A program made the position numbers and the translations under genes. Shown piece by piece: positions 1 to 53,119 of a stretch of 53,886 bases of DNA. Origin of the DNA: Basidiobolus meristosporus CBS 931.73. Its lineage: Eukaryota; Fungi; Basidiobolomycota. The number at the start of each line of letters is the position of its first letter. Positions within the stretch are counted from its first letter, which is position 1. The stretch covers positions 1 to 53,886 of the forward strand of contig MCFE01000605.1 in assembly GCA_002104905.1 (NCBI GenBank), read 5' to 3'. The notes below the pieces were generated by a model. The model saw only the letters and a list, made by a program, of their open reading frames with translations. It was not told the DNA's origin and ran no database searches.

Positions 1-2513
1 GCAATGGAGGCAACGGCGGTGGCTGTGGCGGCGGCAATGGAGGCAACGGCAGTGGGAGGAAACGGCGGCGGCAATGGAGGAAATGGCGGCGGTAATGGAG
101 GCAACGGTGGTGGCAACGGAGGAAATGGTGGTGGTAATGGGGGGAATGGCGGAGGAGGTTCATGCAATGACATTGTCGCAAAGCTGAATGTCCTGGGAGT
201 TCCAGTCGATGCTAATGTTTGTCTTGGTGGTGGCGGGGGTGGCAACCCTGGTGGAGTCACACCGCCGACCTCGGGAGGTAATAGCTGCCCTGATGTTGTG
301 GCTGACGCCAATATTTTGGGAATCAAGGTCAACGCCAATGTTTGTCTCGGTGGTGGTAACAATGGCGGTAACAACGGTGGAAAAACGGTGGCAACAATGG
401 CGGTAATAACGGCGGAAATAATGGTGGTAATAATGGTGGCAATTCATGCCCCGACATCGTGGCCAAATTGAATGTCCTCGGCATCAAGGTGGATGCTAAC
501 GTATGCTTAGGAGGAGGAGGTGGTGGTAGTAATGGCGGAGGAAAGGTGGAGGAAACGGAGGAAACAACGGAAACCCACCACTCTCCGGGGGAAGTAGTTG
601 CCCTGACATTGTTGCTGATGCCAACATCCTAGGAATCAAGGTGAACGCTAACGTCTGCTTAGGCGGAGGAAGTGGTGGCGGAAATGGCGGCAACAATGGA
701 GGCAATAACGGCGGCAACAATGGTGGTAATAATGGAGGAAACGGAGCCACCTGCCCCGATATCGTTGCCAAGGTCAAGCTTCTTGGTATCAATGTTGATG
801 CCAGCATTTGCTTGAGCGGAGGAAACAACGGACCCAACGCCCCACCGCTCTCGGGTGGAAGTAGCTGCCCAGATATCATTGCGGATGCCAACCTACTAGG
901 CATCAAGATCAATGCCAGTGTTTTGCTTGGGTGGAGGTAACGGTGGTAACAATGGCGGCAACAACAATGGAAATAATGGTGGTAATAATGGGGGAAGTGG
1001 AGCCACCTGCCCTGATATTGTTGCTAAGGTCAATCTTCTTGGTATCAAGGCCGATGCCAATGTCTGCTTGAGTGGTGGAAACAATGGACCCAACGCTCCA
1101 CCACTCTCAGGTGGAAGTAGCTGCCCAGATATCGTTGCTGATGCCAACATCCTAGGTATCAAGGTGAACGCTAATGTCTGCCTAGGCGGAGGAAGCGGTG
1201 GCGGAAACGGTGGTAATAATGGCGGTAACAACGGAGGTAATAATGGAGGAAACGGGGCCACCTGCCCTGATATCGTTGCCAAGGTCAATCTTCTTGGTAT
1301 CAAGGTCGATGCCAATGTCTGCTTGAGCGGCGGAAACAATGGACCCAACGCTCCACCACTATCCGGTGGAAGTAGCTGCCCAGATATAGTTGCTGATGCC
1401 AATCTGCTAGGCATCAAGATCAATGCCAGCGTCTGTTTGGGTGGTGGTAATGGAGGAAACAATGGGGGTAATAACGGTGGTAATAATGGCGGAAACAACG
1501 GTGGAAATGGGGCCACCTGCCCTGATATTGTTGCCAAGGTCAACCTCCTTGGTGTCAAGGTCGATGCCAATGTCTGCTTGAGCGGTAGAAACAATGGACC
1601 CAATGCTCCACCACTATCAGGTGGAAGTAGCTGCCCCGATATTGTTGCCGACGCTAATCTGCTAGGCATCAAGATCAATGCAAGCGTCTGTTTGGGTGGT
1701 GGAAATGGAGGAAATAACGGCGGTAACAATGGAGGCAACAACGGTGGGAATAATGGAGGAAGCGGAACCACCTGCCCTGATATTATTGCCAAGGTCAATC
1801 TTCTTGGTATCAAGGTCGATGCCAACGTCTGCTTGAGTGGAAGAAATAATGGACCTAACGCTCCACCACTATCAGGTGGAAGTAGCTGCCCTGATGTTGT
1901 TGCCGACGCCAATCTATTGGGTATCAAGGTTAATGCCAATATCTGCTTGGGCGGAGGTAGAGGTGGCAATAATGGTGGTAATAATGGGGGTAATAACGGT
2001 GGTAATAATGGAGGAAGCGGAACCACCTGCCCTGATATCGTTGCTAAGGTCAAGCTTCTTGGTATCAATGTTGATGCAAGCATTTGCTTAAGTGGAAGAA
2101 ACAACGGACCCAATGCGCCACCACTCTCCGGAGGAAGCAGCTGCCCAGATATCGTTGCCGATGCTAACCTATTGGGTATCAAGGTGAATGCCAGGGTCTG
2201 TCTAAGCGGCGGAAATGGTGGCAATAACGGTGGTAATAATGGAGGTAACAACGGAGGAAACAACGGAGGAAACAACGGAGGTGGCAACTCCCCAGCCACT
2301 GGGTGCCCCGATATCACCGCCAGGCTCGTTGCAGGAGGAATTCGCGCCAATGCATTTGTCTGCTTGAGTGACTCGTCATCCCCCAGACCCAATCCCACCG
2401 ATGGCTCAGGTGGCAACACAAGAGCATGCAACGGTATCAGAGCCCGTGTCGATGCTCTCGGCATCCAAGTCAGAGCAATCATCTGCCTCCCACGTATTGA
2501 AATTCGCATCTAG
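1..2513 (+). CDS. Gly/Asn-rich Cys-x18-Cys repeat protein, copy 1 (5' end outside window; four 1-nt indels in the first 930 bp)
   Basis: ORFs 4..471, 641..940 and 912..2513 join into one reading frame after indels at ~54-56, ~381-385, ~544 and 921-924. It has 8 A/B module pairs (CPDIVAKVNLLGIKVDANVCL / CPDIVADANLLGIKINASVCL) plus two terminal modules and ends PRIEIRI*. Collinear with 3023..4564. Confidence 0.85.
752..2282 (+). repeat. 255-bp (85-codon) coding tandem repeat
   Basis: The first Cys codon of successive A modules lies at 752, 1008, 1263, 1518, 1773 and 2028. The spacing is 255 bp, or 256 across the 921-924 insertion. Confidence 0.95.
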
Positions 2514-2571
2514 ATAGGCTTTCATTGCTTCGATATTATTTCTGGGTGATGCCACTAAGAACAAAATCATG

Positions 2572-2577
2572 AATAAA
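2572..2577 (+). terminator. putative polyadenylation signal of copy 1
   Basis: AATAAA ~60 bp after the stop codon; a short motif, supported by position only. Confidence 0.45.
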
Positions 2578-2900
2578 CTGCATTACTCCTAACCATATCA
2601 AAAGACCGCTCCCTATATCTGTCGAGATGCGAATGAAGTGAGAGAAAGTAAAGCGATGCATCATCCAAGGGATTGCTTCCAATCTGCATTAGCTCCTTAA
2701 GGTTAAGTGCCGTTCATGATGGATTGGAACCAACGTGACCATGCGTGGTGATCATTCTTAGGAGCATCAAAAGCGCTCCAGAGGGAAAGAAAGGGGCGGC
2801 GGCAATTTCGAGCCAAATTTAAGTATGTCTATCCTAATATCTGCAGTGTTCCTAGAGTGTACATCGAATGATCCCGGAGCTTAAGGGGTTCGTGGCTCTC

Positions 2901-2907
2901 TATAAAT
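2901..2907 (+). promoter_or_regulatory. putative TATA box of copy 2
   Basis: TATAAAT ~120 bp upstream of the ATG at 3023. Confidence 0.55.
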
Positions 2908-3022
2908 GCCGTGAAGAACTGACCCAAAAGTATCATTCCAGCATATCTCAATTGGTGCCTTCATTATTCTACTTAATTCTATATCATAGAGGCCCTTATA
3001 TCATCTTTGTACTTACAATAAT

Positions 3023-4564
3023 ATGAAATTCTCGTCCAAGGCTTTAATATTCTTTGCGGCTATTTCCTCCCTAGGATTAGCCTCAGCTGCTCCGCCTCAT
3101 TATCGTGGTAACAATGGCGGAGGAAACGGCGGCGGCGGTGGTGGGGGTGGTAACGGTGGTGGCAATGGTGGTGGCAACGGCGGTGGCAACGGTGGAGGTA
3201 ATGGTGGTGGTAATGGAGGAGGCAACGGCGGAGGCAATGGTGGTGGTAACGGTGGAGGAAATGGTGGAGGCGGAGGAGGCGGTGGTAGTGGCCCTTGCAA
3301 TGATATTGTCGCGAAGCTGAATGTCTTAGGAGTTCCAGTGGATGCTAATGTGTGTCTTGGTGGTGGTGGCGGCGGCGGCGGCGGAAATCCCCCCATTTCT
3401 GGTGGTAATAGCTGCCCTGATATCGTTGCCGATGCAAATATTCTGGGAATCAAGGTCAACGCCAATGTTTGTCTCGGTGGCGGAGGTGGTGGTGGTGGTG
3501 GCGGAGGAAATGGTGGAAATAATGGCGGCAATAACGGAGGTAATAATGGTGGCAACAATGGCGGCAACCCATGCTCCGACATCGTGGCCAAATTGAATGT
3601 CCTCGGCATCAAGGTGGATGCTAATGTGTGCTTGGGAGGAGGAGGTGGTGGAGGAGGCGGAGGAAGTCCACCACTCTCAGGTGGCAGCAGCTGCCCTGAT
3701 ATTGTTGCTGACGCCAATATCCTAGGAATCAAGGTGAACGCCAACGTTTGCTTAGGTGGTGGTGGTGGCGGTGGCGGAAACGGCGGCAATAATGGTGGTA
3801 ACAACGGTGGTAACAATGGTGGTAATAATGGAGGAAACGGAGCCACCTGCCCCGATATCGTTGCCAAAGTCAAGCTTCTTGGTATCAATGTTGATGCCAG
3901 CATTTGCTTGAGCGGAGGAAACAACGGACCCAACGCCCCACCACTCTCAGGTGGAAGTAGCTGCCCTGATATTGTTGCCGACGCCAATCTATTGGGTATC
4001 AAGGTTAATGCTAGTGTCTGTTTGGGTGGTGGTAGCGGAGGCAACAATGGTGGAAACAACGGCGGCAATAATGGAGGAAACGGAGCCACCTGCCCTGATA
4101 TCGTTGCTAAGGTCAAGCTTCTTGGTATCAATGTTGATGCAAGCATTTGCTTGAGCGGAGGAAACAATGGACCCAACGCTCCCCCACTCTCCGGAGGAAA
4201 CAGCTGCCCAGATATCGTTGCCGATGCTAACCTATTGGGTATCAAGGTGAATGCCAGTGTCTGTCTAAGCGGCGGAAATGGTGGCAATAACGGTGGCAAT
4301 AATGGAGGTAACAACGGAGGAAACAACGGAGGTGGCAACTCCCCAGCCACTGGGTGCCCCGATATCACCGCCAGGCTCGTTGCTGGAGGAATTCGCGCCA
4401 ATGCATTTGTCTGCTTGAGCGACTCATCATCCCCCAGACCCAATCCCACCGATGGCTCAGGTAGTAACACAAGAGCATGCAACGGTATCAGAGCCCGTGT
4501 CGATGCTCTCGGCATCCAAGTCAGAGCAATCATCTGCCTCCCCCGCATCCAGATCCGAATCTAA
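3023..4564 (+). CDS. secreted Gly/Asn-rich Cys-x18-Cys repeat protein, copy 2 (513 aa, intact)
   Basis: Uninterrupted ORF with signal-peptide-like MKFSSKALIFFAAISSLGLASA, (GGGN)n/(GGNN)n linkers, 10 two-Cys modules and C-terminus PRIQIRI*. Confidence 0.95.
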   Translation: MKFSSKALIFFAAISSLGLASAAPPHYRGNNGGGNGGGGGGGGNGGGNGGGNGGGNGGGNGGGNGGGNGGGNGGGNGGGNGGGGGGGGSGPCNDIVAKLNVLGVPVDANVCLGGGGGGGGGNPPISGGNSCPDIVADANILGIKVNANVCLGGGGGGGGGGGNGGNNGGNNGGNNGGNNGGNPCSDIVAKLNVLGIKVDANVCLGGGGGGGGGGSPPLSGGSSCPDIVADANILGIKVNANVCLGGGGGGGGNGGNNGGNNGGNNGGNNGGNGATCPDIVAKVKLLGINVDASICLSGGNNGPNAPPLSGGSSCPDIVADANLLGIKVNASVCLGGGSGGNNGGNNGGNNGGNGATCPDIVAKVKLLGINVDASICLSGGNNGPNAPPLSGGNSCPDIVADANLLGIKVNASVCLSGGNGGNNGGNNGGNNGGNNGGGNSPATGCPDITARLVAGGIRANAFVCLSDSSSPRPNPTDGSGSNTRACNGIRARVDALGIQVRAIICLPRIQIRI

Positions 4565-4645
4565 TCATCAGCCTTCACGAGCACATCTATCGATTATTTA
4601 TTTCCCCAATACCCAATATTTTTAGCATTGAACCATTTTTATGCT

Positions 4646-4651
4646 AATAAA
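4646..4651 (+). terminator. putative polyadenylation signal of copy 2
   Basis: AATAAA ~80 bp after the stop codon, in AT-rich sequence. Confidence 0.45.
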
Positions 4652-5349
4652 ATAATCTTGGATAATTATCTTGATGCATGAAGTACTGCGTGTCTGGTGG
4701 TTGAGTAATAATACAGTGTAGCCCACCTATATTGAGCTTAAAAGGATGCAGGAATGCTCTAACATCTTAGGAGATAGAGATCGATCCACAGCATCCTAAA
4801 TTTCATGCATCCAGGACAAATATGCATTGCATCTAGCCAAATATTCACTTGAACTTGATATCGTAGCGAATCTTTTTTTGACTCCTGCAAAGCAAACTGT
4901 ACCAAGTGGTGTGTACTTCATACAAACTTTTGGCGTCCTTAATCCCATTTTCAGGTAACAGATCCTTGCTTTTTATATTACTTACGCACACTACCTGGTA
5001 AGAGATGTGAATATAGATGGCTTCGTACATCCCTATTAGTATCAAAGTGTAAGTCACTGGTGGCTGGTATGCCTAAGAAGCAAATATCCTACAAAATGTA
5101 AATGGTGGGAGAATACTTGAAATGGGCAAGATAAGCATATGATCTCTCCCTCAAGTAGAAAGGTATCAAAGTGAGCAAAAATGAACCTGTGGGTACAGTG
5201 GCTACCAACTAGTTATATGCACCATCATAATCTCTCATGATTTTTAAAGCCCTGCATATAGCTATAGGAAGTCAAATTTCCAATTGGGTTAATGTATTGT
5301 AGGAAATACATGAATATCAGAAACCACTGCAAAAGCAAATATACAGGCC

Positions 5350-27322: not shown

Positions 27323-29843
27323 CATAATCTGAAGCATCTGTGCACCAAGTAAACTCTTTTCCAAAGTCAGGTAATTTTAAGCTTGGCAGCTTAACCAGTT
27401 CATTCTTGAGCATCTGGCAGGTAGTCTCACAAGCTATGTCCCACTTGTGGGTAATGTTTTTCTTAAGGATATCAGCTAAAGGGGTTGCAATACTTGCAAA
27501 GGACTTGACTAATCCAACAATAGGGAACCATTCCAAAAAATGATCTGAGCTCTGATATACTATGGGGCTGCTTCAGATTCTTGATAACTTAAACCTTCTT
27601 AGTGTCTAAGGTTACTCCTGTGCTAGTCACTATGTGTCCCAGATATTCAACATGTTCCTTGAAGAATCCACTCTTGGGTAGCTTGCCATAAAGCTTGTTC
27701 TCACTTAGCTTCTTCAAGATCTTTTCAATGTGCATCAAGGGACACTCTTCTGTCTTGCTGTATATAAATATATCATTTAGGTAGATTATCACAAACTTGT
27801 CTAGGTAATCCTGGAAGACAGTCTGCAACAGGATTATGAATGTTGCAGGGGCATTAGTGAGGCCGCAACTCATGACTAAGTACTTGTAAGGTTCATATCT
27901 GGTCCTGAATGCTGTCTTAGGGATGTCTTCTGGCTTCACCCTAATCTGGTTGTATCCTGACATGAGGTCAATCTTGCTGAAAATAGTGGCTCCATTGAGT
28001 TGGTCCAAAAGCTCATCAATCTAAGGTATGGGGTACTCATTCCTCATAGTAACTGAGTTGAGGGCTCTGTTGTCAATGCATATCCAAAGTGCTCCATCCT
28101 TCTTCTTCACAAAAAGCACTGGTGCTCCCCAAGGTGACTTGCTGAGTGTGATATATCCTTAATCCAGTAACTGATCTATTTGTCTCTTCATCTCTTCCAA
28201 GTCCAATGGACTCATTCTGTAAGGTGTCTTACTCACTGGAGGGCTATCTCCTGCTTCAATGGCATGATCCACGTCTCTGACTAGTGTAGGTCTACTAGCT
28301 CATCTGGAAATACATCTGAATATTCCTTCAAAAGAGTCTGGACCTTGTGGGGTACTGGGGTAGACAAATCTCCTGTAATACTGCAATGAGGAACATCTGG
28401 GTGCCTTTTCTTAGTGCTCTACAGAACTGTGTCTTGCTAAGTTCAGTTGTTAAACACACTGGAATTGACCAAGTTAAAATCCAGTCTGGCAGGTAATAGC
28501 TCATAGGTCTTATTGTCCCTCTGGATTGGAGTAGCATGGGTTCACCAGTTGATTGATGGACTACAACATAATAGCCAGGTCTTTGCAAGTATAAGGTCAA
28601 ACTTGCAGTTCCCAAATACATAGGCCAGTAGATCTTCCTAATAGTCATTTATCTGCATCCTTACAGGCTGAGTAATATGGTTGATTATGTGAGAGTTCCC
28701 ATCAGCTGTTGTGACTGAAGTTGCTTTTGTGGGTTCCAAGTTGATTCCAGTTTTCAAAGAAAATTTCTCATACACATACTCATGCAATGCTCCTGAGTCA
28801 ATCATGATCTTGGCCAGTTCTCCATTGATCACTGCACTCATGTTTAACAGCTTTCCTGAATTGGAGGTCATCTGGGATAGGTATTCTTCTGCCATATGGA
28901 AGGTGATGCTGAGTCTTCTTCATGTTCATCCTCCATGTTACTATGCTCCAGTGCCTCAATATGGTTAAAGGTTCTTGATGGCTGGTGTCCATTTCTTCTC
29001 TGAGGGCAGTACTTTGCAATATGTCCCTGCTGGTGGCGATTGAAGCAAAGTCCTTTCTTCTTACATTCTCCTGAGGTAGGATTCTTCTGCTTAGCATCTA
29101 TTTCCATTGGCACTGCTTCTAACTGTCTTCTTTCATAGTGATTGTAGCCTCTCTGATTAGTCATTGTGGGCTTCCCGGCTCCAAACATAGCTGAGTCATA
29201 GTCAATGGCAATCTTGATGGCTTCTTCAATATTCTGAGGTCTTTGATAATTCACTTCCTTACAAGTTCTTTCTTTCATCCCATCAATAAAGTATTCAGCT
29301 TGATCCAGCAGGTCCATTTTTTCAACTTGCAAAAGTAGACATCTATATTCATAGATGTACTCTTACACCATTCCTTTCTGTCTGAGTGTCTTCAAGTTTC
29401 TTCTTAGTAGTGTCTGTTGGTGTGGGGGCTCAAAGCCATCCTGAATTTCCAACACAAACTCATCCCAGGTAGAGATTGTATAGCATCCCATCATGGTGGC
29501 TGACCTAATCTTACTATGGTACCACTGTAAAGCTGCATCTGCCTGGTAAGTGGCTGCATAGCTTAACTTGCTTTCTGGAGCAATTCCCTTAGCTTTGAAA
29601 GCTACTTCAATCTGGAAGCGCCAAGTTCCCAGGTTTGCATTGACTCTACCATAGTACTGGTTGACCTTTACACTAAAGTTGCTCTTGACAGGGTTTTGCT
29701 GGCTTTGGGCCATGGCAGTCATTCCTTGTTGCTGCTGGGACAGGATATGTTGCATAGCATTCATCCATTCTTGATTTTTGGACATCTTGAAGGAGGCTTC
29801 TTCTTTCTTCAGGAGAGATGTTTCTGGTTATTGCTGCTACCAA

Positions 29844-35414: not shown

Positions 35415-37176
35415 AAGAAGTTTGGCAATTTGATATGGAGACTACTGAATGCCCTGTGAAAAGCAACACAGTTGCTGATGCCTTATCATGAAGAGAATAA
35501 CTTGCACAACCAACTTGGTGCATGGATCAGGTTGACATAACCTACTACCAAAGTACTTGGAGGACCAAGACACTTCTAATGAGGTAGATGTAGAGATCAA
35601 GAGGATAATACAGGATGAAGCCAGCAAGTTTGTAGTACAGAATGAAACACTCTGCCAAACTGTTGATGGAAGCCCTACTACCTATTGCCCTTATGTTCTT
35701 TGCCTGGATTTAATATGTGAGTTACACAATGGATATGGACATCTTGGAATTGAAGGAACCTATGGCCTTGTGAAAGCCAGAGCTTGGTGGCCTAGAATGA
35801 AACAAGACATTGAGAAGCTAGTGAAAACATGCCCAAATTGCCAAATCAATCAAGGCCAACCACAGAGAATTGCTGAACTCTTTCCGTTGTTGCCTGTACA
35901 ACCATTTGAAAGTTGGGGAATTGACTTTATTGGAAGACTTCCAACCACCAGGAAATGCTACTTTTGGATCCTAGTAGCAATTGACCATGCCACTAAATGG
36001 CCAGTAGATAAGGCAGTACCTGTAGCCAGTGAACAGGAAGTTGCAGGTTTCATCTACCATGAGATCCTTATGAAGTTTGGATGCGCTGTAGGGATTTTAT
36101 ACAATAGAGGAGCAAACTTTATGGCAACAACATTGAATGCTTACCTGGAAATGCATAAGATCAAACACTTAAAAACCTTGGCATGTCACCCTAGAACTAA
36201 TAGAGGCACTGAGTGGTTTAGTGAATTATTTGTAAAAATGCTAACAAAGTATGCAAATGGAGTTGTCAGTAGATGGAATCAGTATATAGACCAAGCACTC
36301 TTTGCATGAAGAGTTAGAGTACATAACACCACTCAACAATTGCCATTTTAATTAGTGTATGGATACCAACCAATGATTCCAAGAGATCTCACACACCCAA
36401 AGCTTGCAGATGGCTTAGAAGAAGAGTTCAGTCAGCAAAGTAGACAGCAGCAGCTGGAACAAGGACGTCAAGAGGCACAGGCTAAAGTATCTCAAAGTGC
36501 AGAAAAGATGAAGCAGAGATTTGATAAGACTTTATCACCAGAAGCATTGACAGTTAGGAACTTTGTGTGACAAGAATCAATACTTGGAAGAAGTCTGAGC
36601 CACAATGGACAGAGCCTTTTAAGATCATCAGAGAATGTCCACATGCAGCTAACCAACCAGTGGACAAACAAGGGAATATCCGGGAAGATTTAGTTCATAG
36701 AGACAGACTCAAACTTGCAAGACTTACCAACAATACTGAACCATTAACATTTTGGCATCACAAGTAAAGAGATTCAGGAGTACCCTTCCAACTTTAGTAG
36801 GGGAGAATGTAATGATCTACTGCTTAAATGTTCGAGTTAGATCAGTTCTTAGTCAAATCAATTAGGTATATGCTTAGCCTATCAGTATATCAGTGTTGTC
36901 TATCAAATCAGTAGCATTAGTCAGCAAATGAATCAGCAGATCTTTATTGGACAGAAATAGATATATAAATTAGGATCTTATTAGGTAGTGATGATTTATT
37001 CAAATGAGTCATCAGCCACAACCTACATTAGGAAATGTAATTAGTCAGCAATTGATCTGGCAAAGTGTTCATAAGGAGCTGCTGGAACTTCAATAAATAT
37101 CAGTTCAAGTTTTAGTGAATACAATACTTGCTAAACTTGCTGTTCCCCTACAACTCTTGTATCAAGAGTTGTAACA

Positions 37177-41400: not shown

Positions 41401-42185
41401 TCTTACTTGGCTATTGTGATGATATTAAAGGGTATAGACTTTATGATGGCAAAATTCACAATCTGATCAAGAGTAGTGACATTATACTTGAGGAGAACTC
41501 ACAACATAGAGTCACTGAGATTATTAGCCAGCTACCAGATGATGCAATCACCACTAATGAAGACAATACTAACCAAGCCATATATGGAAGAAAACTCTAC
41601 TAGTTCCAGAACAGAACAGATCATCCCTGTTAGGAGATCTACCAGAGTAAGAAACAACCCTGGAGCTTGGAGGCAAACATCCAATGACCATGGAGAATCT
41701 TATCTTGACTTGGGTGCCAAACTGCAGAGTCTAGAACAAGTAATGCAAGGTACAAATATTACTATGTAGCAGCAAGCCATGAAGGGCAACTTTCATTTAT
41801 TGATCAGGGCTAAAATGTGGGAATGGGTAGTTAACCAATTGGGAGAAAGTCAATAGGATGTAGCTTGGTCTTCTACATTAAGATAACCTCAAATGGTACC
41901 ATTAATAAGCACTAGGCTTGATTGATGACTAGATGCTGTTCCCAGATCCAGGGACTAGACTTTAGCTAACCTTGGCTCTGGTAGCCAAATTTAACTCCAT
42001 TAGGACAGTTCTAGCCCTAGCAGCTGTACACAGTCTAGATGCACACAAAATGGATGTTAAAACAGCCTTTCTAAATGTAGATCTGCTAGAGGCTATATAT
42101 ATGGAGCAATCAAGGGGTCTTACAAAACTTTGCCAGCCCCATAATGTGTGCAGAATCAGGAAATTGTTGTATAAGCTTAAGGAGA
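38500..42185 (+). mobile_element. Ty1/copia gag-pol remnant interrupted by solo LTR Y
   Basis: Motifs LLCSLPDKSEPLI, LHRRLGHI, FIDDNTRY, PHTPQENGVAE, ILLGYCDDIKGYRLYD and KMDVKTAFLN appear in copia order (integrase before RT). Confidence 0.88.
38809..40017. mobile_element. solo LTR-like element Y (long copy, ~350-bp extra segment)
   Basis: Runs TGTGGT...CAACACAACA; inverted homologue of 49595..50453. Flanks CATC/TATT differ by two transitions. Confidence 0.65.
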
Positions 42186-42269
42186 CACTTGTAAACTTAC
42201 TAGGACTTGCCCTAGCTCTAGTCAAAGAATTGTTAGAGGGACTCAAGGGGATAATGACCCTTCATGTCA

Positions 42270-43970
42270 GTCAGACAGTCCTACAGGAGCCAAATAAGGG
42301 TACATACATAAATGTATGCATAGGGAATAAGGAGATTCTTGCCCTTATTGACACAGGATCATCTATGTTGATGATGACAGAATCATTAGCAAAACATTTA
42401 AAATTAGACATAAGACTTGTTCCATTAGATAGTGTCACATTGAGCCATGAGTGCCAAATGATCCCGTAATGTGCCAGAGAGGCCAAGTGAGCCTATACTT
42501 TGCCACAGAGTGTGAAACTTAGCTCTGCACCTTCACGCAATGCCACCCTTGTGTTTCACCCATTGTGTTGGAGAAAATACATTATTTAACCTTTTTTTTT
42601 AGGTCAATGTTGTGCAGGATGTGTCAGAGTACAAAAGAATTGAAGATATACATCTGGTACTCAATACCCATGGCACTCTGAATCTAGCTCTTGTGGCTTG
42701 TAACATGTCAGAAAAATGCATGGCACTATCTTGGTTCACTGGAACCGTCTGGTACTATATTTAATTATCAACTCTAAAGTAAGATCTATACAAATCACTC
42801 ACAGTGCCAGATAGTACCAGTGGACCAAGATAGTGCCATGCATTTTTCTGACATGTTACAAGCTACAGGAGCTAGATTCAGAGTGCCATATGTATTGAGT
42901 ACCAGATGCATGTCTTGAATTCTTCTGTTCTTTTACACATCCTGCGCAACATTGATCTACAAAAAACATCAAAAAATGAATTTTCTCCTGCATCATAGGA
43001 GAAACACAGGGGCTGCCGTGCATTATGATGCAGAGCTATGTTTCACACTCTGTGACCAAGTATAGGTTCACTTGGCCTCCCTGGCACACTATGGCATCAT
43101 TTGGCACTCATGGCTCAATGTGGCACTATCCAATGGAACAAGTCCATAATCCCCAACAACACCATCTGAAGCTGGGTAGCAAATGACCAACTAGATCAAA
43201 CAGTAGGTGGGGAACCTAATTGCCCCCTCTGGCTAGGTAAACTGATTATACACCAAGATGTTGTGGTCTTACCTATTGCAACCAACAACCTAGTTTTTGG
43301 CAAGAGTGGGCTTATCTCAAATAAGATGGACATACTCTACAGTGCATCTGAGCTCAGGTAGGATACCAGAGTATCCCTTGTTTGCCCAAATAGTGGAACA
43401 AAAGAATGCACTTGGAAAGTGCAAACGGAAACAGGTCACTCAAAGCTGGCAACACTCCCTCCACCAGCAAAAATCAATATAATAATGAAAACAAGACCAA
43501 CCTGTAGGTTTGATGAGGTATGACACAAACATTACATGCAACAAGAATCACCTATGAAGAAATATTTGCTGGGGCAGTCAGTTTAATACAAGACATAATC
43601 AGAGAGGGACAAGGCAAGTTACCCATGCCAATACAAAGTACGGAGTTATTACCCAAAAAACAGAATACCACCTGAGAGGAGGTTCCTTGATCATTAAGGA
43701 GAGGGATGCTGCATTGATTCCCATGTCCATACTGAACACTGTCAGACATAAGATGCAAGGAATCAACTGTTGTGCCCTCACAAGGCCTTGACAGCCCCCC
43801 TGTTTTGTTGGATATGTATCAGTGATAGGTACCGCAGTTGTTGAGGTATATGCAGGCCTGGTAGAAGCTGCTAGATCACCAGAAGTAAAGCTCCTAATCA
43901 AAGGACCCCTCCATGAAATCCACACACATCTTAAACTCTATTTCTAAGAAAGACCTATCCTGGTGTCAAT
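42270..43970 (+). mobile_element. Ty3/gypsy protease to RT-start fragment (different family)
   Basis: Reads LALIDTGSS. The frame is restored across R7 (LDI|IPNNTI), and LNSISKKD lies near 43930. Confidence 0.65.
42413..43145. mobile_element. palindromic foldback MITE copy R7 (complete)
   Basis: Runs AGACTTGTTC...GAACAAGTCC with a perfect ATA TSD. Confidence 0.92.
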
Positions 43971-51780: not shown

Positions 51781-52186
51781 GTTTTATCAGACTCTCCTGA
51801 CTTACCTGTGGATCCCTGCCTTCTGCCCAAAGTTTGAAGAAAACTTGTAAAAGGAATACTCACCGTAAGTATCACCCATCATCTTTCCCTAGTCTTGTCC
51901 TATAAAGGCAAAGATACTTTATCTTTGTAAAACTATTGGTCAAAGCTGCATTGACTTTATTACCCTGCTGGTGGATTTTACAGTTGTTACAGTATTGGAA
52001 GCTTTAGTACAATACTCTATCAAAGGACGTTGAAACCAGTACCTTCTGAAGTGACGCTAACTTATTTAAGTTGGGGATTGTGGCTCAATAGTTGTATTCT
52101 TGACATACTAGTGGCTTTACAAACCCACAATCTAGTTTAGTATATTCCAGTATTCCTTGCAAGTTCATCCGCCTCCCTCTGCTACC

Positions 52187-53119
52187 ATGTCCAACCTAGA
52201 GCTGAACTTTGCCCAGCTCATGGCTGCCTTTACCCAACTGCAGCAAGACCATGCAGACCTCAGAAACACTCTTGCTCAGTTCCAGAACCAAAGTGTCCAG
52301 CAAACTAGCCATGTCCCAGTCTACCAAGAACCCAAGTATACTCCTGCTACCAAGTTCAATGGCTCTCAGAATGAATTTCGTGGCTTCATCAACATGGTGA
52401 AGAACAATCTTGCACTCCAGCCCAACCGGTACCCCACTGACCAGGCCAAAGTTGGTTTCATCTCCAACCTGCTTACTGGTACAGCTCTCAAGTGGTTCTC
52501 CCCATTAGTGGAGACCAACTCTCCCCTACTCAGAGACTATCAAGCCTTTCTCACTGAAATGGAGCTAACATTTGGTAACCTTGACCAAGCCAGAACTGCT
52601 CCCAACAAGATCAAGACCCTCAAACAAGGGAACAAACCAGCATCAGTCTATGCCTCAGAATTCCGACAACTCTCCAGTGACCTCAGCTCCTGGGGTCAAG
52701 CAGCCTTGATAAGCCAATTCCAAGATGGCCTTAATGATGAAGTTTGTGATCTGCTACTCACACTCCCAGATCCAGATACATTGGTTGAAGCTATGCACCA
52801 GGCAATCCGGTGTAATAACAGACTATTCCAGAAGAAGCAAAAGAATTGTCAAAGACACATTCCTGTTGCAGTCCCAGCCCTTACTGCTCCCCAAGTCACT
52901 CCAGAAGATCCTATGCAGATTGATAGTGCTAAATACAAGAAACTATCAAAGAGTGAAAAGTCCAGACGTCAACAAGCCAACCTCTGTCTATACTGTGGCC
53001 AACCAGGTCACTTTGCCAAGTCCTGCCCCAACAAGAAGTCCAGCTTCAAGCTGGTGCAGTCCTCCAGTAACCAACCTGATTCAGATCTGTCGGGAAACTC
53101 TAATGTCCAGTTGCACTGA
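52187..53119 (+). CDS. Ty3/gypsy Gag (PEG10/sushi-like capsid plus CCHC knuckle), intact
   Basis: Reads MSNLEL..KFNGSQNEFRGF..KVGFISNLLTGTALKWF..QFQDGLNDEV..CLYCGQPGHFAKSC. Confidence 0.93.
   Translation: MSNLELNFAQLMAAFTQLQQDHADLRNTLAQFQNQSVQQTSHVPVYQEPKYTPATKFNGSQNEFRGFINMVKNNLALQPNRYPTDQAKVGFISNLLTGTALKWFSPLVETNSPLLRDYQAFLTEMELTFGNLDQARTAPNKIKTLKQGNKPASVYASEFRQLSSDLSSWGQAALISQFQDGLNDEVCDLLLTLPDPDTLVEAMHQAIRCNNRLFQKKQKNCQRHIPVAVPALTAPQVTPEDPMQIDSAKYKKLSKSEKSRRQQANLCLYCGQPGHFAKSCPNKKSSFKLVQSSSNQPDSDLSGNSNVQLH

Follow-up and report, generated by a model that had tools for sequence, protein, structure and literature searches.

Two tandem genes for proteins built of four-cysteine module pairs in Basidiobolus meristosporus, members of a protein family found in the genus Basidiobolus

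The window analyzed here, a 53,886-nucleotide (nt) stretch of DNA from the fungus Basidiobolus meristosporus CBS 931.73 (contig MCFE01000605.1), opens with two tandem genes, copy 1 and copy 2, whose products are made of repeated cysteine-bracketed modules. The true building block of these proteins is a unit of 59 amino acids (aa) with four Cys residues, i.e., a pair of modules and not one module, and the purifying selection acting on the units is very strong. In the searches that we ran the family has no detectable match to a known family or fold, and wherever the source of its members was looked up or listed it was found only in the genus Basidiobolus. We propose that the two paralogous genes would encode secreted, non-enzymatic extracellular proteins, in which five (copy 2) or nine (copy 1) domains would be threaded on flexible Gly/Asn spacers. 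The features of the gene pair are as follows (HMM, hidden Markov model; ORF, open reading frame):

1..2513, plus strand: copy 1, nine module pairs (18 modules); its 5' end lies beyond the window start and its frame changes near 55, 380, 537 and 921
537..547, plus strand: frame change in copy 1 from frame 3 to frame 2; 11 bases missing in DNA-run contigs
912..2513, plus strand: longest uninterrupted ORF of copy 1, 533 aa with 12 modules; its ATG is internal and not the true start
921..921, plus strand: extra T in a T4 run, shifting copy 1 from frame 2 to frame 3; missing in DNA-run contigs
2514..3022, no strand: intergenic spacer between copy 1 and copy 2; the junction is covered by DNA-run contigs
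2898..2907, plus strand: TATA-like box ctataaatgc, a putative promoter element read from the sequence, some 120 nt upstream of the ATG that starts copy 2
3023..4564, plus strand: copy 2, an intact intronless gene of 513 aa, based on the ORF list, module count, six-frame HMM scan and composition
3848..4024, plus strand: example of a 59-aa four-Cys unit (A module, Pro-containing linker, B module), the basis of the profile and of the structure model
4355..4561, plus strand: C-terminal unit and tail (CPDITARLVAGGIRANAFVC ... CNGIRARVDALGIQVRAIIC-LPRIQIRI), kept in paralogues and in B. ranarum

The gene pair and its repeat unit

Copy 2 opens with signal-like residues 1-22 and a Gly/Asn run; four A/B module pairs come next, followed by a divergent C-terminal pair and finally the tail CLPRIQIRI. 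Its N-terminus (MKFSSKALIFFAAISSLGLASA, followed by APP) combines a K-containing n-region with a hydrophobic core and an A-x-A end, and on the strength of this predicted signal peptide the product is probably secreted. The 20 Cys residues of the protein make up exactly ten C-x18-C modules (five pairs), and Gly and Asn account for 32% and 16% of its composition, respectively. Neither a transmembrane segment nor a glycosylphosphatidylinositol (GPI)-like tail was seen in the copy 2 sequence. Dibasic sites (KR, RR, KK or RK) are absent from the proteins of both copies, and CC doublets number zero in copy 2 and likewise in the copy 1 ORF.

A six-frame HMM scan of the window returned the two genes with E values of 1e-127 and 1e-159, and the unit profile matched nowhere else in the 53,886 nt. 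The modular layout therefore far exceeds chance expectation. Contigs of public DNA runs carrying the same species label were compared with nt 1-5000 of the window. Single contigs of two such runs (2462-3473 and 2462-3483) run from the last part of copy 1 across the spacer into copy 2, and since they are independent and bridge the junction they confirm the tandem layout. The last 223 coding nt of the two copies are 94.6% identical, and this similarity ends exactly at the stop codon (2513 and 4564), the 3' flanks of the two copies being unrelated when compared. Such an abrupt end suggests an old duplication, with conversion or selection restricted to the coding part.

An earlier reading of this DNA, made from the sequence alone, had described two tandem genes with 18 (copy 1) and 10 (copy 2) C-x18-C modules. 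Both counts were reproduced, as were the lack of CC doublets and dibasic Kex2 sites and the presence of (GGNN)n/(GGGN)n and Pro-containing linkers. The signal-like N-terminus that it reported holds for copy 2; in copy 1, which runs off the window start, the signal peptide lies outside the window. However, the sequence-only reading took the single 21-aa module as the repeat unit, whereas the DNA repeat period is 243-279 nt and the small members of the family, at 107-131 aa, comprise a signal peptide and exactly one module pair. For these two reasons we consider the pair to be the unit. One DNA period spans an A module (CPDIVAKVxLLGIxVDAxVC-L), a linker, a B module (CPDIVADANLLGIKVNAxVC-L) and a Gly/Asn spacer. 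The linker inside the pair is a conserved Pro-containing stretch (SGGNNGPNAPPLSGGSS), and the spacers between pairs are of the (GGNN)n or (GGGN)n type.

All four Cys residues (C1, C20, C39 and C58) are invariant in an alignment of 58 units, and at least 90% of the sequences keep the second-module Gly, G50. Both genes of the window show the organization typical of the family, with pairs of C-x18-C modules that contain the conserved Gly and, in copy 2, follow a signal-like N-terminus. The four Cys residues of each unit would presumably form disulfides. Modules are neutral or acidic in charge, and about half of the residues in each 21-residue module are hydrophobic. The architecture around the unit varies between members. 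For instance, the paralogues P0001 and P0002 also have the ten-module layout but with short linkers that are not of the Gly/Asn type, and in many paralogues a single unit is joined to a low-complexity tail rich in Gly, Pro or Asp/Tyr. Tails of this kind are common in wall proteins and in those of the extracellular matrix. A distinct last pair and C-terminal tail (C-L-P-x-I-x-I-x-x) are kept between paralogues and species, and in divergent subfamilies a similar L-x-x-hydrophobic-x-hydrophobic stretch is also encountered after the first module.

Reading frames and selection

Beyond the 12 modules of its longest ORF, copy 1 has six further modules in frames 1, 3 and 2 of nt 1-940, which brings the total to 18. 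The frame is broken by four one-base changes near 55, 380, 537 and 921, located at G3, A5, A3 and T4 runs, respectively, and the sequence around these breaks is otherwise perfectly module-coding. One contig in each of the two public DNA runs equals the window over 773-1196 minus one base at 921, with the frame restored. Another contig in each run is shorter by 11 bases at 537, again with the frame restored; because it differs from the window at three further positions, it may represent another allele. The listed DNA-run contigs cover the breaks at 537 and 921 and not those near 55 and 380. Since the frame is restored at both covered positions, we consider that the organism itself probably has an intact copy 1 and that the breaks are assembly or strain indels, which is proven for two of the four.

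At least the break at 921 looks like an error of the assembly consensus. All four breaks fall at short homopolymer runs close to the start of the window, so other genes near contig ends of the same assembly may carry similar artefacts.

Substitutions were analyzed in seven equal-length units drawn from copy 1 and copy 2. Differences were found at a proportion of 0.46 of synonymous sites (pS) and 0.047 of non-synonymous sites (pN, i.e., 4.7%). In pairwise comparisons of these units the synonymous rate (dS) ranged from 0.16 to 1.45 and omega, the ratio of the non-synonymous rate (dN) to it, from 0.01 to 0.17, while the C-terminal 69 codons of copy 1 and copy 2 gave a dS of 0.22 and a dN of 0.013. 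With pS high and pN low, the units are old, have not been homogenized and are nearly unchanged in protein sequence, including the linker inside the pair. This very strong purifying selection is in turn strong evidence that the plus-strand frame is translated and functional.

Selection of this kind bears on whether the locus is non-functional, that is, low-complexity repeat DNA or a pair of decaying pseudogenes beside transposon debris. Such a view could draw on the four frame breaks of the assembled copy 1, on the retroelement debris that makes up the remaining window, on the long antisense ORFs that are also present, and on a search for public RNA runs that found none. However, omega stays at 0.01-0.17 across old repeats, copy 2 is an unbroken frame that has its start codon and signal-like N-terminus and is preceded by a TATA-like box, the ten-module layout recurs in B. 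ranarum, and two of the copy 1 breaks are missing in other DNA data. The long antisense ORFs opposite the genes are without support; they are Pro/Leu runs, as expected opposite GGN/AAY codons. We therefore regard a non-functional locus as extremely improbable.

Relatives and predicted fold

The nearest proteins, obtained by a word-based search, are four paralogues or orthologues from B. meristosporus CBS 931.73 and B. ranarum with 41-48% identity. When 1.84 billion representative proteins were searched exhaustively by HMMER with the unit profile, 32 matches were obtained; the source of 27 of these was looked up, and all proved to come from B. meristosporus CBS 931.73 or B. ranarum. A broader profile, built from 19 sequences, returned 20 proteins in a second search, every one labelled Basidiobolus. 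Altogether the family includes at least 32 clusters at 50% identity, which range from 107-aa single units up to 18-module proteins, and the ten-module layout is present in B. ranarum as well. Homologous members are already public as hypothetical proteins. A collection of 15 billion proteins contains neither the copy 1 nor the copy 2 protein in exact form, and the ESM Atlas contains copy 2 letter for letter.

Seven near-identical single-unit members of 107-119 aa were observed in B. meristosporus CBS 931.73 (P0019, P0041-P0044, P0063 and P0065). They bear consecutive tags (K493DRAFT_298299-298305) on one 188-kb contig and correspond to a tandem array of the small form.

The sole exception in source among the relatives is the metagenomic ORF cluster P0006, a 572-aa charged ORF with a lone B-type module (CPDIVADANLLGIKVDASICL) flanked by KRR and KR. 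This module shares 95% protein and 73% DNA identity with the modules of the window. It stems from a relative that the sequenced Basidiobolus genomes do not include, or else is a Kex2-type peptide form of the module. Its position is:

L001:7129-7191: P0006 module on the Joint Genome Institute (JGI) metagenome contig Ga0683347_0000823 (92 kb); the locus read is 13.7 kb with a GC content of 51%

The flanking basic residues of P0006 recall polyprotein precursors, in which the spacers would be cut and the modules or pairs freed as disulfide-looped peptides with a signal, pheromone or antimicrobial role. Such processing would suit the species, since B. meristosporus CBS 931.73 has 43 Kex2-processed repeat proteins (KEPs), the highest number among the strains surveyed in one study (PMC7329392). 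Like these proteins and the Ustilago Rep1 repellents, the two genes would encode secreted fungal tandem-repeat proteins. In contrast to Rep1 and the KEPs, both copies lack the dibasic sites at which a Kex2-type enzyme would cut, and their repeats are disulfide-capable domains. The modules are neutral or acidic rather than cationic, the conservation of a distinct C-terminal pair and tail is unlike what uniform peptide repeats show, and the single-unit members require no processing. A precursor role for the two genes is accordingly quite improbable.

Matches to characterized families were sought by sequence profile. Pfam searches with the two window proteins, 10 relatives and 32 relatives yielded only sub-threshold noise summed over repeats (GPHH, DUF2583 and PTP-SAK), and no match to the unit profile was found among Protein Data Bank (PDB) sequences at E<=10. 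The name 'Hydrophobin' has been given automatically in UniRef to four relatives (P0011, P0038/P0045, P0059 and P0063), and one relative is named 'Xylose isomerase-like TIM barrel domain-containing protein'; P0009 is also among the automatically named members. These names are probably machine predictions on proteins without such a Pfam domain and should not be propagated.

Hydrophobins have eight Cys residues in the pattern C-CC-C-C-CC-C, with two CC pairs, and fold into a small beta-barrel. That the family is a very divergent form of them, as the four UniRef names would have it, gains something from its small members, which are likewise secreted, hydrophobic, Cys-containing proteins of about 110 aa in tandem arrays, with hydrophobic segments bracketed by Cys, and for which a surface-active or coating role is plausible too. 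The C-terminal motif C-L-P-x-I-x-I may also recall the ends of hydrophobins. However, the Basidiobolus unit has four Cys residues against eight and no CC pair, the 20 Cys residues of copy 2 falling into 10 C-x18-C pairs. The hydrophobin profiles PF01185 and PF06766 match none of the 32 members at E<=10 and neither of the window proteins at E<=1, in searches where the HMMER filters drop very weak matches. The unit is moreover predicted, in a model of moderate confidence, to be helical or alpha/beta, is combined into multi-domain proteins on Gly/Asn spacers, and did not match a solved hydrophobin structure in three fold searches, and the TIM-barrel name on another relative shows that the automatic names are unreliable. 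Taken together, these differences make a divergent hydrophobin very improbable.

The structure of the unit was modelled with AlphaFold2 (AF2) from the 58-sequence alignment and reached moderate confidence, with a predicted local distance difference test score (pLDDT) of 74 and a predicted template modelling score (pTM) of 0.55. In this helix-rich model, helices occupy residues 2-10 and 39-48, corresponding to the first half of both modules, the G-x-V-x-A stretch is coil, and short helical turns occur at the second Cys of each module. A low-confidence full-length model of P0002 likewise opens nearly every module with a 10-residue helix and draws short strands in the second halves of the last two modules. 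The family-averaged hydrophobic moment of the second half of the module (G-I-x-V-x-A-x-V-C) is about 2.2 at 170-180 degrees versus 0.5 at 100 degrees, and the averaged hydrophobicity of the first half showed no clear preference for either periodicity. Since a Gly follows the conserved Leu, a helix C-cap would fit this position better than a tight beta-turn. From the model and the moments, each half-module may be described as an amphipathic helix that is capped by Gly and continues into an extended segment, likewise amphipathic.

The sequence-only reading had instead seen each module as a two-strand beta-hairpin. In the corresponding scenario, modules stapled by a disulfide would assemble into functional amyloid or beta-solenoid surface layers like those of chaplins or class I hydrophobins. 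In favor of this, all modules alternate strongly in their second half, with the family-mean moment peaking at 180 degrees. The strands drawn in the low-confidence full-length model lie in these second halves, a strand-like segment that has no partner within a monomer could find one in another molecule, and the Asn-rich linkers are prion-like in composition. On the other hand, AF2 places a helix in the first half of both modules, the shallow full-length run concurs, and the Pro-Asp start and Leu-Gly end of this first segment seem to resemble helix caps. The hairpin reading is therefore half right at best, with a predicted helix in the first half and strand-like periodicity only in the second.

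The chaplins of Streptomyces, which carry two Cys residues about 17-18 residues apart around a hydrophobic segment, resemble the family in having short and long multi-domain forms and a proposed role in surface assembly. Unlike the Basidiobolus proteins, however, they are bacterial, whereas the module described here comes from a fungus, is predicted to be helical in its first half and belongs to a four-Cys pair. The chaplin profile PF03777 had no Pfam match in the window proteins, the 10 relatives or the 32 relatives, and neither chaplin nor hydrophobin domains were encountered in any of the 32 members. Amyloid layers of stapled hairpins are an unlikely explanation.

Searches by shape were equally negative. 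The unit model gave a best E of 3.6 with Foldseek against the PDB and a best Z of 2.3 with VIA-align wide over 48,161 chains. A shape search of the ESM Atlas returned unrelated enzymes at template modelling scores (TM) of 0.5 or lower, and feature searches of the Atlas for P0019, P0038 and copy 2 gave no usable match. The low-confidence Atlas model of P0038 has a weak ACT/SecD-like alpha/beta likeness (TM 0.33 by query), which was not used. The conclusions of the sequence-only reading that hydrophobins, Rep1/Kex2 repeats and chaplins do not fit, and that the family is uncharacterized, both survived the Cys-pattern, dibasic-site and Pfam tests and the profile and fold searches.

Genomic setting and possible role

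The remainder of the window (4600-53886) is poor in ORFs, and the larger ones are fragments of Ty3- and copia-type long terminal repeat (LTR) retroelements:

29363-29785: gag fragment, LTR retroelement
35557-36309: integrase fragment, LTR retroelement
41972-42469: copia-type reverse transcriptase and protease fragment, LTR retroelement
52157-53119: gag/Ty3 capsid fragment, LTR retroelement

With such fragments spread over the remaining ~49 kb, the gene pair sits at the edge of a transposon-rich stretch.

In the explanation that we favor for the gene pair, the ~59-aa domain would comprise two homologous 21-aa half-modules joined by the conserved Pro-containing linker. Each half-module would run from a Cys through a short amphipathic helix, the conserved Gly and a strand-like segment of alternating hydrophobic and polar residues to Cys-Leu. 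Half-modules hold more hydrophobic residues than a 40-residue core can bury, and the domains are therefore likely to self-associate or to bind hydrophobic or wall surfaces. The proteins may be multivalent components of the wall, the spore surface or an adhesive matrix, a role to which we assign about an even chance. Repeat-rich fungal wall proteins and adhesins (e.g., of the Als/Flo type) and glycine-rich structural proteins offer a partial parallel, with a signal peptide, a repeat number that varies between paralogues, low-complexity spacers and no enzyme domain. In contrast to them, the Basidiobolus family is unrelated in sequence and lacks a GPI signal and a Ser/Thr-rich stalk, and its repeats are old, diverged at synonymous sites and not homogenized.

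Several observations weigh against this explanation. No GPI or PIR wall-anchoring signal was seen in the sequences. The assembled copy 1 is frame-broken at four places and is in frame elsewhere for only two of them (537 and 921). The fold model of the unit is only moderately confident, and full-length AF2 modelling of P0002 failed (pLDDT 38). A search of the Basidiobolus literature found neither a paper nor an experiment on this four-Cys family, and no RNA run was found in the search for such runs.

A more far-reaching possibility, which we hold to be rather unlikely, is that the unit is a new fold and a self-assembling amphiphile, forming a hydrophobin-like surface or adhesion system of independent origin in Basidiobolus. 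In that case molecules would pair with one another at air-water or host-cuticle interfaces through the free amphipathic strands of their half-modules, and the multi-unit proteins with Gly/Asn spacers would provide multivalent cross-linking, for example at the sticky tip of capilliconidia or in the spore coat.

Species of Basidiobolus live in amphibian and reptile guts, are carried by insects and occasionally infect humans. To our knowledge, hydrophobins have been described essentially from Dikarya, and the means by which early-diverging fungi such as Basidiobolus make water-repellent or sticky spores and aerial structures are largely unknown. An expanded, constrained and genus-restricted family of hydrophobic mini-domains is a concrete candidate for such a spore or aerial surface role. 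The novelty lies in the protein family and its domain, not in the general notion of secreted fungal repeat proteins. At 59 aa the unit is short and easy to synthesize, express and solve. Should its fold prove new, a protein family would be gained and perhaps a small amphiphile of practical use; even as a plain wall filler, the family would still be a clear marker of the genus.

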